DNA of 64,000 bases from the NCBI RefSeq assembly GCF_964188315.1, contig NC_135666.1, positions 2,418,001-2,482,000 on the forward strand. The letters are read 5' to 3'. The notes under the pieces were generated by a model. That model had not been told where the DNA came from and ran no database searches. It saw only the letters and a program-made list of their open reading frames with translations. Every line of letters starts with the position of its first letter. The stretch's first letter is position 1. This document shows, piece by piece, positions 1 through 64,000 of the stretch. The stretch comes from Podarcis muralis (taxonomy: Eukaryota). A program made the position numbers and the translations under genes.

Positions 1-27
1 GTTGCTGTTCCTTCGCCCCAGCAAGGA

Positions 28-290
28 ATCATAGAATCATAGAATCATAGAGTTGGAAGAGACCACAAGGGCCATCGAGTCCAACCCCCTGCCAAGCAGG
101 AAACACCATCAGAGCACTCCTGACATATGGTTGTCAAGCCTCTGCTTAAAGACCTCCAAAGAAGGAGACTCCACCACACTTCTTGGCAGCAAATTCCACT
201 GTCGAACAGCTCTTACTGTCAGGAAGTTCTTCCTAATGTTTAGGTGGAATCTTCTTTCTTGTAGTTTGGATCCATTGCTCCGTGTCCGCT
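28..290 (-). mobile_element. CR1 LINE 3' fragment, present only in duplication copy 1
   Basis: (ATTCTATG)n-type tail reversed (atcatagaatcatag); minus ORF 109..360 has CR1 ORF2 C-terminus [23 protein letters not shown]...[10 protein letters not shown]; absent at 53482 in copy 2. Confidence 0.93.
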
Positions 291-1199
291 GTGGGAGAGT
301 CAGTGGGACCCAGTTTCCCAGCTCTGTAGCACAGTGTGCTGCCACTGCCTCCCTTGACATCTAACCCACCAATACTTAGCCAGCATGGTCCAACAGAGGA
401 TCCTTGAGGAGGTCATTTCCCAGTCACACAGCATGGTCCTTACATCAGCTGGGCTCCTGCCCTGCATTAGCAGCATGGATATGTCTTGCAAGCAACGTCA
501 CTTCCTGCCATCTCCCCAGCACCAACACAACCCATAGATCTGGAAGACCAACCAAACCAGCAGTGGTCAGGGGGTGGGGGTGGGGGGGACTGGGACATGG
601 TGCAGAGATGAAGGTCCTTAAGGACAAGGCAGGTTTGGTCAGTCCTTGATGGTCCAAAACCTGCCCAGAAATGGAAACAAAAGGAAGGCACAAGTAATGC
701 AACTCTATCTTGCTGTGTGTGTGTTTATACTTTTTAGAAATGTTTAACTGCTGCTTGGATGGACTATGGGAGAAATGTTTGGGTGTCCTCATTCAACACA
801 GTTCAGTTCTTTTTTTGGGGAGGGTAACATAGTTCTTATTCCTTTTCATCTTTAAGCTGTTTATCATGGTTGCATTGAGATATATCTTTGTTTACATTAG
901 AGCATATGACATGCAACAATTACATAAAATTAAAACAACAATAAACACACAGACAAATGTTTCTGACAAGGTTGTGTCAAAGTGTATATAGCAAAAGTAA
1001 GACAATTACTACAGATATGAAATGGTGCAAAGTAACAGTGACAATAAGTAAGAGGAATTTTGTATCAATAACAATTAGAATTTATAGGAATTTATAGGAA
1101 AGGGGTAGGGGGAAAGTTAAAATATGTCCTTCATGCACGCTAGACTGTGCTGTAAACTTTGGGTACGGTTCTTCCATATGCCTCTTTATTTGTGTAATC

Positions 1200-1205
1200 A
1201 ATAAA
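1200..1205 (+). terminator. Candidate polyadenylation signal of GLRA4-type 3'UTR (paralog at 54395-54400)
   Basis: AATAAA ~1.27 kb after the GLRA4 stop in copy 2 and conserved in copy 1. Confidence 0.4.
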
Positions 1206-61300: not shown

Positions 61301-62146
61301 CTATAGAATATGAAAGGTGGACAAAACTCTGGAATAAAGATATGAAATTTTCAGCTTGTGTCAGACTTCGGGAAAATATGGAAAAGATGATGTACCGATG
61401 GTACATCACACCAACGAAATTAGCTAAAATGTATAAAACCGGGGAGAAGACTTGCTGGAAATGCAAGAGGAAGGAGGGAGACTTCTTCCATATGTGGTGG
61501 TCCTGCGAAGAAGTTAAAAGATTTTGGGGGTTGGTCTACGATGAGTTGAAAAAGATCCTAAAGTATAACTTTCCCAAAAAGCCCGAGGCATTCCTCTTAG
61601 GAATGGTGGGGGAAGAAATTAAAAAAGACGACCAAACCCTCTTTCAATATGCAACAGTATCCGCAAGGATACTGTTAGCACAGAATTGGAGAACAGCCAA
61701 CGTTCCAATGATTAGTGAATGGCAAACTAAACTAATTGAATATATGGATACAGCAATAATGACACAGAAGATCAGGCAACAGAAGAATACCAAATTTATT
61801 AACGATTGGAATAAATTTCTCTCATACATGGAACGGACCTTGGGAAATGACAAAATCACAGTAGGCATAATATAAAAATCGCGAGGTGAGAACAATGATT
61901 AGATAAAGACACTGCTGAACGTAATATTGAGTTACCGCTCGCTCGAGGTGGTGGGAAGTCAACAATGTTATAGATTTGTACAATGTTTGAGTGTATAGTC
62001 AGTAAGGAATCCAATTGTGTTTTTGTATATTCTGTTTTCCTTTAGGTTTTCATGTTTTTCTTTTTTTCTTTTATGGATGATGTATATATGTTTTTAACTG
62101 CTGGAATATAATAAAGGTATTTTTAAAATTTAAAAAATAAAAATAA
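58343..62146 (+). mobile_element. Young L1, 5'-truncated within the endonuclease, rest of ORF2 intact (stop 61875)
   Basis: YAPN, GDLN, RIDQIW, SDH; GTRQGCPLSPLLF, YADD; CWKC..HMWWSC; 10-bp TSD aaatctggag (58333-42, 62147-56) at a TT/AAA site; empty site at ~4882-4893. Confidence 0.97.
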
Positions 62147-63649
62147 AAATCTGGAGTTTGGGTTTCACCAGCCTCCTATTAACAGGACTGGAGGAACCAG
62201 TAGCTGTGGCCAGGAAGGCCAGATCTGGAAGATGAGAAGCCACCAGTGTTGTCTACAGGGTTTCAGGCCAAGGATTTTCCCAGCCATTTCAGGAGATGCC
62301 CACCTGGGACCTTCTGCTCTAACACAGGGCTTTGACCATTCCTCAGACTTAGTCCAGGCATTCTCCAAGGAGGTCAGTCACTGACTGCTAACCTCCAGGG
62401 TTGAGGGTGCTATACATTGGCAAGGGCTGGCTTTTGCAAGTATCTAATTGGTCAGTGGGCACTGTAGGTAACTGGATGCCAGACGAGATGGAGCCTGGAA
62501 AACATAAGAGCCTGCCTGTTGGATCAGGCCAGTTGCCCATCTAGTCCAGCATCTTGTCCTCACAGCAGCCAACCAGATGGGAAGCCCACAAGCGGGGCAT
62601 GAGTGCGAGAGAAACTGGTATTCCAGCAACTGGTATTCAGAAGGATTACTGTGCACAGCTGTGGAGGCAGAGCGTAGCCATCATGGCAAGCACCCATGGA
62701 GAGCCTTCTCCGTCCCCTAGAGATCCAGATCTTTACTGAAGAAGTTGTTCACAGCTCTGCCCCCCAACCCACAACATCTAGGGGCAGAGGGATCAATGCC
62801 TTTGCATGGAGCTGGAGAAGTCTTGCTTGGAAGGCTTGCTGAGAGCCCTAGAAGATACCAAGGGAAACATCGCTTCCTTGTTCTCAGTGCTAACTGGACA
62901 CAATCCTACTTCCAGGAAGCCAGACCCTCTTCACTTTGGGCATAAATATATTTTTGTTTTTTGCACCTGTGCAGTTGGAAACAGCCTCAGCACACACCCC
63001 AAACAAGGAAAAGGGGCAGTTTGTAAAGAGGTCTCATTTCCTTCTTATTGTTTTCTTAAAGCAGGTAGTGATTCCGGGAACACCTTATTGATTCATAAAA
63101 AATTATGCACTGCTTGATTTGTGAAAACTAAACAAACCTCAACGTGCTTTACAAAAAAAATAGAACAACAACAACAATAATTTATTATCTATACCCCACC
63201 CATCTGCCTGGGTTTCCCCCGCAACTCTGGGCAGCTCCTAACAGAATATTAAAAACACAGTAAAACATCAAACATTAAAACTTCCCTAAACAGGGCTGCC
63301 TTCAGATGTCTTCTAAAAGTCAGATAGTTGTTTATTTCCTTGACATCTCATGGGGGGGGGGGCATTCCACAGGGCGGGTGCCACTACCAAGAAGGCCCTC
63401 TGCCTGGTTTTCTTGTCAATAAGAAAAATCAACAATGTAAAACTTTCAAAAAAATTAAAACAACAATGGAGTAGAAACAGATTGAAGGACACACTCCTTT
63501 TTTGGAGGTTTTATAGCAGAGGTTGGATGGCCACTTGTCAGGGATGCTGCATAACTTGACCTGTGATAGGAGCCTCTATCGCAAAGTCTCCCCTTCCCAG
63601 CCTCTTCGCATGCTAAGCTGCTTACCCATCTTGTTCTTTTCTGCTTGAG

Positions 63650-64000
63650 GTCTCCCATAGCTCCAGCCCAAGACAAGACCGTTTTTCAGGCAACGAGTTA
63701 ACGCTTGACATGGCCCTGGATTCCTTCGATGACCAATACGAGGGCTGTGAACAGACGATGGAGAAGGAGATTGCACGGCTAAACCAAACCGAGCTCCTCA
63801 AAAACAAAATTTATGCCAAAGCCTGGAAATTAGCAGCCAACTTGAGGGATGATAGTAACTGGCCCAGAAACCTCAAGCCAGAGTACGCTGCAGCAATCAT
63901 GGCTTATACCCTTGAAGAACCCAGGTTGTATCCTGATTTCAACGCAGCTGTAAGAGAAGCTGGGGAATCCAAGGAACATTACCGGAATAATTTCGACTTC
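63650..64000 (+). CDS. Ecto-ADP-ribosyltransferase copy 2 catalytic exon (runs off window)
   Basis: 6 differences from copy 1 in 351 bp, frame open, same acceptor. Confidence 0.93.

Follow-up and report, generated by a model that had tools for sequence, protein, structure and literature searches.

The question and the locus

Does the lizard Podarcis muralis carry an amplified unit in which an ecto-ADP-ribosyltransferase (ART) and several immune-type GTPases travel together as a possibly interferon-inducible module? This was the proposal of the first-pass annotation of the stretch analysed here, 64,000 nucleotides in length (hereafter the window), which described it as a ~53-kb tandem amplicon and as a candidate for an undescribed system. 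The window corresponds to OZ076965.1 (GCA_964188315.1), positions 2,418,001-2,482,000. It contains no N and lies about 2.4 Mb from the chromosome end, in a GIMAP/immune-GTPase cluster directly 3' of a glycine-receptor alpha gene. We find that the ART and GIMAP genes are linked and have been duplicated together, as a direct-plus-inverted mosaic, and that the locus is probably an old, rearranged duplication in an immune cluster evolving by birth and death, not a clean amplicon or a new system.

Flanking DNA was compared up to 5.3 kb beyond the window on the left and up to ~94.6 kb in extended coordinates on the right, an extended coordinate being the genomic position minus 2,418,000. Two P. muralis flank loci overlap the window at 100% identity, L010 (1-15801, equal to window 48200-64000) and L011 (5332-23584, equal to window 1-18253).

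A direct repeat of about 16 kb

The recurrence of position 1 near 53456, from which the amplicon had been deduced, is exact: window 1-33 corresponds to 53456-53483, and the period is 53,455 bp. Comparison of the window with itself extends the match, with 291-1793 aligning to 53484-54988 (96.3% identity), 1791-4893 to 55230-58342 (91.8%) and 4884-6706 to 62147-64000 (93.7%). The two copies, termed A (left) and B (right), are homologous beyond both edges of the window. On the left, L011:1470-5358 aligns to window 49626-53482 at 93.7%; on the right, window 4884-9736, 9729-10309 and 10271-12037 align to L010:13948-21610 at 88-94%, through the rest of the second ART gene (ART B) and a CpG island. 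Direct collinearity breaks at window 12037, equivalent to extended 69.8 kb. The features of this repeat and of its surroundings, including insertions of short and long interspersed elements (SINE and LINE, respectively), are:

1-12037, plus strand: part of direct-repeat copy A inside the window; the copy starts at L011:1470, 3.86 kb left of the window, and is collinear with copy B at 88-96%.
49626-64000, plus strand: part of direct-repeat copy B inside the window; the copy runs on to L010:21610, extended ~69.8 kb.
34-290 (257 bp), no strand assigned: SINE-like insertion private to copy A, with a 98% identical copy at 29923-30179.
52898-53125, plus strand: duplicated last exon of a glycine-receptor alpha gene (M4 helix and stop), E-value 4e-18 to glycine-receptor alpha-3 and alpha-2.
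58288-61875, plus strand: LINE ORF2, open over 1195 residues, with endonuclease and reverse transcriptase, belonging to a 3.8-kb insertion (58343-62146).
41294-45724 and 45742-51313, plus strand: young local tandem duplication, 97-99% identical, spanning the left junction of copy B.

The head-to-tail duplication measures ~16 kb (20 kb with the LINE included) and contains the last exon of the glycine receptor, an ART gene and a CpG island. A 53-kb tandem amplicon is not what these alignments describe, as direct homology covers only ~16 kb and the GIMAP part of the second unit is inverted.

A complete glycine-receptor gene of 489 residues ends 331 bp left of the window. Because this gene adjoins copy A, copy A is the original next to the receptor, and the exon at 52898-53125 is a relic left by the duplication; the opposite assignment, with copy B as the original, was rejected on the same ground. 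The last exon is the only receptor exon in the window, a six-frame search of which, using short hallmark motifs, found no M1-M3 or Cys-loop exons. The reading frame of the duplicated exon is still open, and its protein is 97% identical to the functional exon left of the window.

The 3.8-kb LINE insertion lies in intron 1 of ART B and is present in neither copy A nor the Podarcis raffonei and Lacerta loci. It is probably young, since it is missing from the other ART copy, from P. raffonei and from Lacerta agilis. Short interspersed repeats (22065-22275, 54989-55229 and 47152-47364) recur at several duplication breakpoints, and also as private insertions in copies; they may have mediated rearrangements.

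The second unit continues as an inverted copy

Beyond its direct part, the second unit repeats window 7686-32903 in inverted orientation and carries paralogues of two GIMAP genes of the window, one encoding a protein with two AIG1 domains (the two-domain GIMAP) and one encoding a protein that ends in a CaaX box (the CaaX GIMAP). Window 32903 down to 17726 aligns to extended 71.1-84.6 kb at 82-92% identity, and window 11274 down to 7686 aligns to extended 88.5-92.7 kb at 93-94%. Two called genes occupy the block:

Extended 71.9-76.7 kb, minus strand: paralogue of the two-AIG1 gene, 626 residues, with two AIG1 domains in one protein.
Extended 83.3-84.6 kb, plus strand: CaaX GIMAP paralogue (CaaX GIMAP B), 224 residues.

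The second ART (305 residues), the second two-AIG1 gene and the second CaaX GIMAP are all located at most 31 kb right of window position 53456. The second unit does not stop after the ART with its GIMAPs left unduplicated: both GIMAP types recur, inverted. The proposed co-amplification of ART and GIMAPs is borne out to the extent that these genes are linked and were duplicated together; the arrangement is a mosaic of direct and inverted parts. No second copy of the septin-like GTPase, another member of the proposed module, was seen up to extended 94.6 kb.

A third, inverted partial copy is found at L012:15231-19461 (extended 88.5-92.7 kb). It consists of the last ART exon together with the CpG island, and no catalytic ART exon was seen with it up to extended 94.6 kb. 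The CpG island, which bears a motif resembling an interferon-stimulated response element (ISRE), is present in three copies within 97 kb.

Age of the duplication and its relatives

The copies are not recent: they are 88-96% identical where direct and 82-94% identical where inverted. A tree was built from the upstream segment of 3.1 kb. In it, the path from A to B (0.063), a measure of non-coding divergence, is longer than that from A to P. raffonei (0.042-0.046), and the paralogues cluster by species in both L. agilis (100/100) and P. raffonei (100/99). L. agilis carries two ARTs on the same strand ~40 kb apart, each followed by GIMAPs; behind the second ART these include an inverted two-domain GIMAP, which matches the arrangement of copy B. 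From the tree distances, the clustering by species and this shared architecture, we infer that the duplication is old and that gene conversion has homogenised the paralogues within each species.

Synteny comparison places an ART-GIMAP-glycine-receptor neighbourhood in P. muralis, P. raffonei and L. agilis alike. In P. raffonei, one ART immediately follows the receptor gene and falls within a multi-AIG1 gene model, and a second is found ~600 kb away in another context; Podarcis lilfordi has three related ART proteins. In Rhineura floridana, 33 kb separate the orthologous ART from a septin-like GTPase; in Hemicordylus capensis, the distance between an ART and a septin-like GTPase is 9.6 kb. All five compared clusters are within ~2.5 Mb of a chromosome end. 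In three squamate families, an ART adjoins a septin-like GTPase.

These comparisons also bear on a different account, in which an ART cassette of ~8-9 kb (about 1629-9300) is by itself mobile and repeatedly duplicated and the GIMAP paralogues, which arose by separate duplications, merely surround it. The ends of the ART segment do vary between loci: in L001, homology spans the equivalent of 881-9280 before resuming at 38582-41270, and L004, from L. agilis, holds 1629 to 9743. The distant second ART of P. raffonei would also fit, as would the greater divergence of the inverted GIMAP block (82-92%, as against 88-96% for the direct block). We nevertheless consider an independent cassette unlikely, given that the inverted segment of P. 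muralis is one contiguous copy of 7686-32903 in which the ART 3' exon, the CpG island and both GIMAPs are held together, and given that the order of an ART followed by an inverted GIMAP is also that of L. agilis.

Two intact ART genes

The window holds one complete ART gene (ART A; P0363, 332 residues, XP_077772789.1) and the first part of another (ART B; P0362, 305 residues), with the following exons:

4670-4819, plus strand: ART A exon 1, with start codon and signal peptide, matching residues 1-50 of P0363 at 100%.
6353-7138 in the annotated splice, plus strand: ART A exon 2, catalytic domain with the R-S-EXE residues and four conserved cysteines; the open reading frame stops at 7156.
8170-8253, plus strand: ART A last coding exon, encoding an acidic C-terminus with no hydrophobic glycosylphosphatidylinositol (GPI) signal.
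8811-8879, plus strand: possible alternative ART A exon for a hydrophobic tail, weakly matching the tail of L. agilis P0006 (70% over 23 residues).
58119-58268, plus strand: ART B exon 1, with the start of P0362 annotated at 58200.
63647-64000, plus strand: ART B exon 2, intact and cut by the window end; its full extent is L010:15448-16233.

That the window encodes an intact ARTC, as first described, is upheld by the Pfam ART match of ART A (PF01129, E-value 8.9e-68, profile positions 3-220 of 222), the R-S-EXE residues and the four conserved cysteines, all of which are present. ART A aligns with rat ART2.2 (PDB 1GXY) at an E-value of 1e-28, the four cysteines included, and the motifs FRGV, FTSSS and E-D-E-VLIPP fall on the ART2.2 positions of R-S-EXE in both ART A and ART B. 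Exon 1 encodes a hydrophobic leader, as read from the sequence. The GPI-anchor signal typical of ART1-4 is not found, P0363 and P0362 both ending in an acidic tail that resembles the secreted ART5 type. Because of this acidic C-terminus without a hydrophobic GPI signal, ART A and ART B are predicted to be secreted. They would be mono-ADP-ribosyltransferases of the arginine-specific type, of which the R-S-EXE residues are characteristic.

Exon 2 of ART A and ART B differs at 17 of 786 nucleotides and at 9 residues; computed on this exon alone, with no exons joined, synonymous divergence (Ks) is 0.042, non-synonymous divergence (Ka) 0.016 and Ka/Ks 0.39. The lizard ARTs belong to a divergent lacertoid clade, with 74-90% identity within Lacertidae plus Rhineura and at most ~52% to all other matches.

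GIMAP genes and a truncated septin-like GTPase

The GIMAP and GTPase content of the window is:

17628-19210, minus strand: CaaX GIMAP A (P0241, 245 residues, CNIL end), with its main exon at 17628-18347 and its start-codon exon at 19148-19210; AIG1 E-value 8e-68.
26611-26870, minus strand: upstream exon of the CaaX GIMAP gene, bounded at 26611 by a splice donor and carrying a gamma-activated sequence (GAS), an ISRE core and a CCAAT box.
28905-29678 and 30565-31470, plus strand: two-domain GIMAP A, AIG1 E-values 2e-67 and 2e-70.
43151-43748 and 48741-49315, minus strand: frame-broken GIMAP fragments, one in each copy of the local tandem duplication.
35305-36663, minus strand: open reading frame of a septin/AIG1-like GTPase; homology at 35413-36618, covering residues 1-402 of ~567.
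34095-35288, plus strand: LINE reverse-transcriptase fragment adjoining the break in the septin-like gene.

Most of this content had been recognised at first pass and is confirmed here: the CaaX GIMAP is an AIG1 gene ending in CNIL (17628-18377, minus strand), the two-domain GIMAP consists of the two AIG1 open reading frames at 28905-29678 and 30565-31470, and the GIMAP pseudogenes are the two frame-broken fragments. The GIMAP structures closest among those solved are GIMAP4, GIMAP7 and GIMAP2. Both ART copies and the GIMAP paralogues are intact.

The two GIMAP types differ in their P-loop. CaaX GIMAPs have the canonical sequence GKTGAGKS (pattern GxxxxGK[ST]), while in the two-domain type all four AIG1 domains of both P. 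muralis paralogues, and the L. agilis orthologue, carry GxxGGGRS, with arginine for lysine (GGGRS sites at window 29001 and 30739, L010:27288 and 25083, and L004:17836 in L. agilis). Since the change from lysine to arginine is conserved, it is not decay. Among the 120 best matches to CaaX GIMAP A (proteins P0241-P0360), 92 end in C-x-x-X, mostly CNIL, CSIL or CTIL. These come from lizards, snakes, turtles, tuatara and one bird, and the fish and mammal matches checked among the 120 are without the box. The distribution suggests a large sauropsid clade of GIMAPs that are probably prenylated.

The septin/AIG1-like GTPase was reported as a member of the module. Its open reading frame is present at 35305-36663, but it is truncated at the 3' end: it matches residues 1-402 only, is cut after about residue 415, and ends in an (AAT)n repeat next to a LINE fragment. 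For these reasons it is probably a pseudogene. The family to which it belongs is vertebrate-wide, unnamed and uncharacterised (zebrafish si:ch73-170d6.2 type), its members being ~567 residues long and encoded by a single exon, with a Cys-rich motif as well as a coiled-coil tail; the gene models of some species fuse it to fibronectin type III (fn3) or stonustoxin-like domains. An L. agilis model of 1507 residues (L004:17063-23117, minus strand) combines stonustoxin-helical, thioredoxin-like, fn3 and septin/AIG1 domains and adjoins the second ART of that species; this may reflect a true fusion or the merging of annotations.

Other long open reading frames (13579-14529, 15802-16896, 24307-25158 on the minus strand, 10906-11526, 39457-40140 and others) gave no Pfam match, and two of them gave no credible Atlas match. 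They were treated as chance or transposon-derived.

Interferon-type motifs

Interferon inducibility had been proposed from ISRE and ISRE-plus-GAS motifs. Both are present, the former at 11138-11149 and the latter at 26769-26792. The first lies in a CpG island:

10960-11620, plus strand: CpG island with an ISRE-like motif, GAAACCGAAAGT, at 11138-11149 on the minus strand and a second element, resembling an interferon regulatory factor site, at ~11053-11075.

The CpG-island motif GAAACCGAAAGT is kept in 3/3 P. muralis copies and in L. agilis, and is lost in P. raffonei (L002). The second element, at 26764-26792 in the upstream exon of the CaaX GIMAP, comprises a GAS (26784-26792), an ISRE core (26769-26778) and a CCAAT box; the inverted paralogue (L012) carries it unchanged, and L. 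agilis almost unchanged. Such conservation of promoter elements between paralogues is suggestive only, because the sequence around them is conserved to the same degree. Upstream of the lizard ART genes themselves, no ISRE was found.

Counts over the window are mixed. The strict ISRE matches 3 times against 1.27 expected, a number reached in 14/100 shuffles, and one of the three matches is inside a LINE; the enrichment is not significant. The core GAAANNGAAA occurs 14 times against 6.1 expected, three of these in one purine repeat, and the GAS consensus TTCCNGGAA occurs 7 times against 2.2 expected, two of these being paralogous copies. The GAS-ISRE element of the CaaX-GIMAP upstream exon and the ISRE of the CpG island may confer interferon responsiveness. 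The evidence for co-induction of the genes by interferon consists of motif matches, and a literature search returned no paper on interferon or infection induction of these genes.

The motifs are one of several observations that speak for a clean head-to-tail amplicon of ~53 kb whose unit, comprising the ART, the CaaX GIMAP, the two-domain GIMAP and the septin-like GTPase, would be a co-amplified interferon-inducible module. The period is real, the second unit again contains an ART, a two-AIG1 GIMAP and a CaaX GIMAP, both units have conserved ISRE/GAS-like elements, and in mouse an ARTC member, ARTC2.1, is induced by IFN-beta (PMC5705771). We nonetheless hold such an amplicon to be very unlikely. 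Collinearity ends at 12037 and the GIMAP block is inverted; the one septin-like GTPase found up to 94.6 kb is truncated; the copies are 4-18% diverged, hence amplification was not recent; and the strict ISRE is not enriched. Nor is a direct biochemical link obvious between an ART predicted to be secreted and GIMAPs that are cytosolic.

That the second ART end is the other haplotype misplaced in tandem, an artefact that a repeat touching both window edges in a repeat-rich region near a chromosome end might bring to mind, is scarcely credible in view of the 4-8% divergence, the private SINE and LINE insertions, the 47 kb of different sequence between the copies, the 9 residue differences in exon 2 of two separately called ART proteins, and the ART paralogues of three other lacertids (pairs in L. 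agilis and P. raffonei, three related ARTs in P. lilfordi).

Comparison with known systems

Vertebrate GIMAP (IAN/AIG1) clusters evolve by tandem and segmental duplication. The lizard locus resembles them, for example the human cluster at 7q36.1, in its adjacent AIG1 genes, its multi-domain member (like GIMAP8) and its pseudogene fragments. It differs in that ART genes and a septin-like GTPase are interspersed with the GIMAPs and that the cluster abuts a glycine-receptor gene; moreover, one member has a C-terminal CaaX box in place of a transmembrane anchor, and the two-domain members have arginine for the P-loop lysine.

With the ARTC family (ART1-5, rat ART2.2 and the avian "erythroblast" ARTs), the lizard ARTs share the Pfam ART domain, the R-S-EXE residues, the four cysteines, a gene structure in which an exon for the signal peptide precedes a single large catalytic exon, and lineage-specific tandem duplication. 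They differ in forming a divergent lacertoid clade and in the acidic C-terminus, without GPI signal, of the main isoform. Their location inside a GTPase cluster is also unlike that of the mammalian ART1/ART5 locus.

The CaaX GIMAP invites comparison with interferon-inducible GTPases that are prenylated at a CaaX box (GBP1, GBP2 and GBP5), with which it shares the C-terminal box and a GAS-plus-ISRE element in or near the first exon. CNIL is also the CaaX box of GBP2. The G domain of the lizard protein is AIG1/GIMAP, in contrast to the GBP/dynamin-like domain of GBPs, and its prenylation and induction are putative.

Finally, complex segmental duplications in immune clusters near chromosome ends likewise combine direct and inverted blocks, transposons near breakpoints and gene conversion. 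Relative to these, nothing in the lizard locus is mechanistically unusual; its gene mix is lineage-specific.

Probable history: an old, rearranged duplication

The structure and gene content of the locus, the intactness of its copies and its synteny in relatives are direct observations, and they fit the following order of events, which we infer. An ancestral block would have had the order glycine-receptor 3' exon, ART, CpG island, CaaX GIMAP (minus strand) and two-domain GIMAP (plus strand). A complex rearrangement would have copied this block ~53 kb downstream, its first ~16 kb (receptor exon, ART and CpG island) in direct orientation and the next ~25 kb (ART 3' end, CpG island and both GIMAPs) inverted. 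Later, a SINE would have entered copy A and a LINE intron 1 of ART B, a local tandem duplication of 4.4-5.6 kb would have arisen at the left junction of copy B, which it spans, and the paralogues would have exchanged sequence by gene conversion. The ART would stand among GTPases through an inherited neighbourhood, not through a shared mechanism.

Several points weigh against this account. In the 3.1-kb tree, the node that sets copy B outside A plus P. raffonei has support of 71/66. The order of events is drawn from two-copy comparisons, and gene conversion blurs dating. Further copies may lie beyond ~94.6 kb on the right or 5.3 kb on the left of the window. Lastly, the conserved ISRE/GAS-like elements in both units, together with the excess of the GAAANNGAAA core and of TTCCNGGAA, leave room for real co-regulation. 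We still regard an old, rearranged duplication in a cluster evolving by birth and death as the probable history of the locus.

To call this an undescribed system is not warranted, the intact genes being members of known families (ARTC and GIMAP). Those that could be traced, namely both ART genes, both CaaX GIMAPs and the second two-AIG1 gene, already have public calls or annotations, and the mode of evolution, by segmental duplication, inversion and gene conversion near a chromosome end, is ordinary. A functional coupling of ART and GTPases would be speculation, their only tie being the neighbourhood. A literature search found no paper on ART-GIMAP linkage, reptile GIMAP clusters, CaaX GIMAPs or the septin-like family at this locus; the synteny and the side observations appear to be undescribed, but are descriptive.

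Implications for squamate immune clusters

In a broader form of the original proposal, secreted ARTC enzymes, prenylated CaaX GIMAPs, two-domain GIMAPs with an arginine P-loop and septin-like GTPases would make up an ancient squamate neighbourhood near a chromosome end, kept together by co-regulation through shared interferon-responsive elements, acting in one defence pathway and duplicated as a block in lacertids. We give this scenario little credence. Taken at face value, it would add a new vertebrate immune module that joins an extracellular ADP-ribosyltransferase to cytosolic GTPases. What the evidence supports is a lineage-specific, rearranged segmental duplication in a GIMAP cluster in which ART genes are long-standing neighbours. 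The locus is of use as a documented example of a reptile immune cluster in which direct-plus-inverted duplication goes together with gene conversion, and as a map for the study of GIMAP and ART genes in lacertids.

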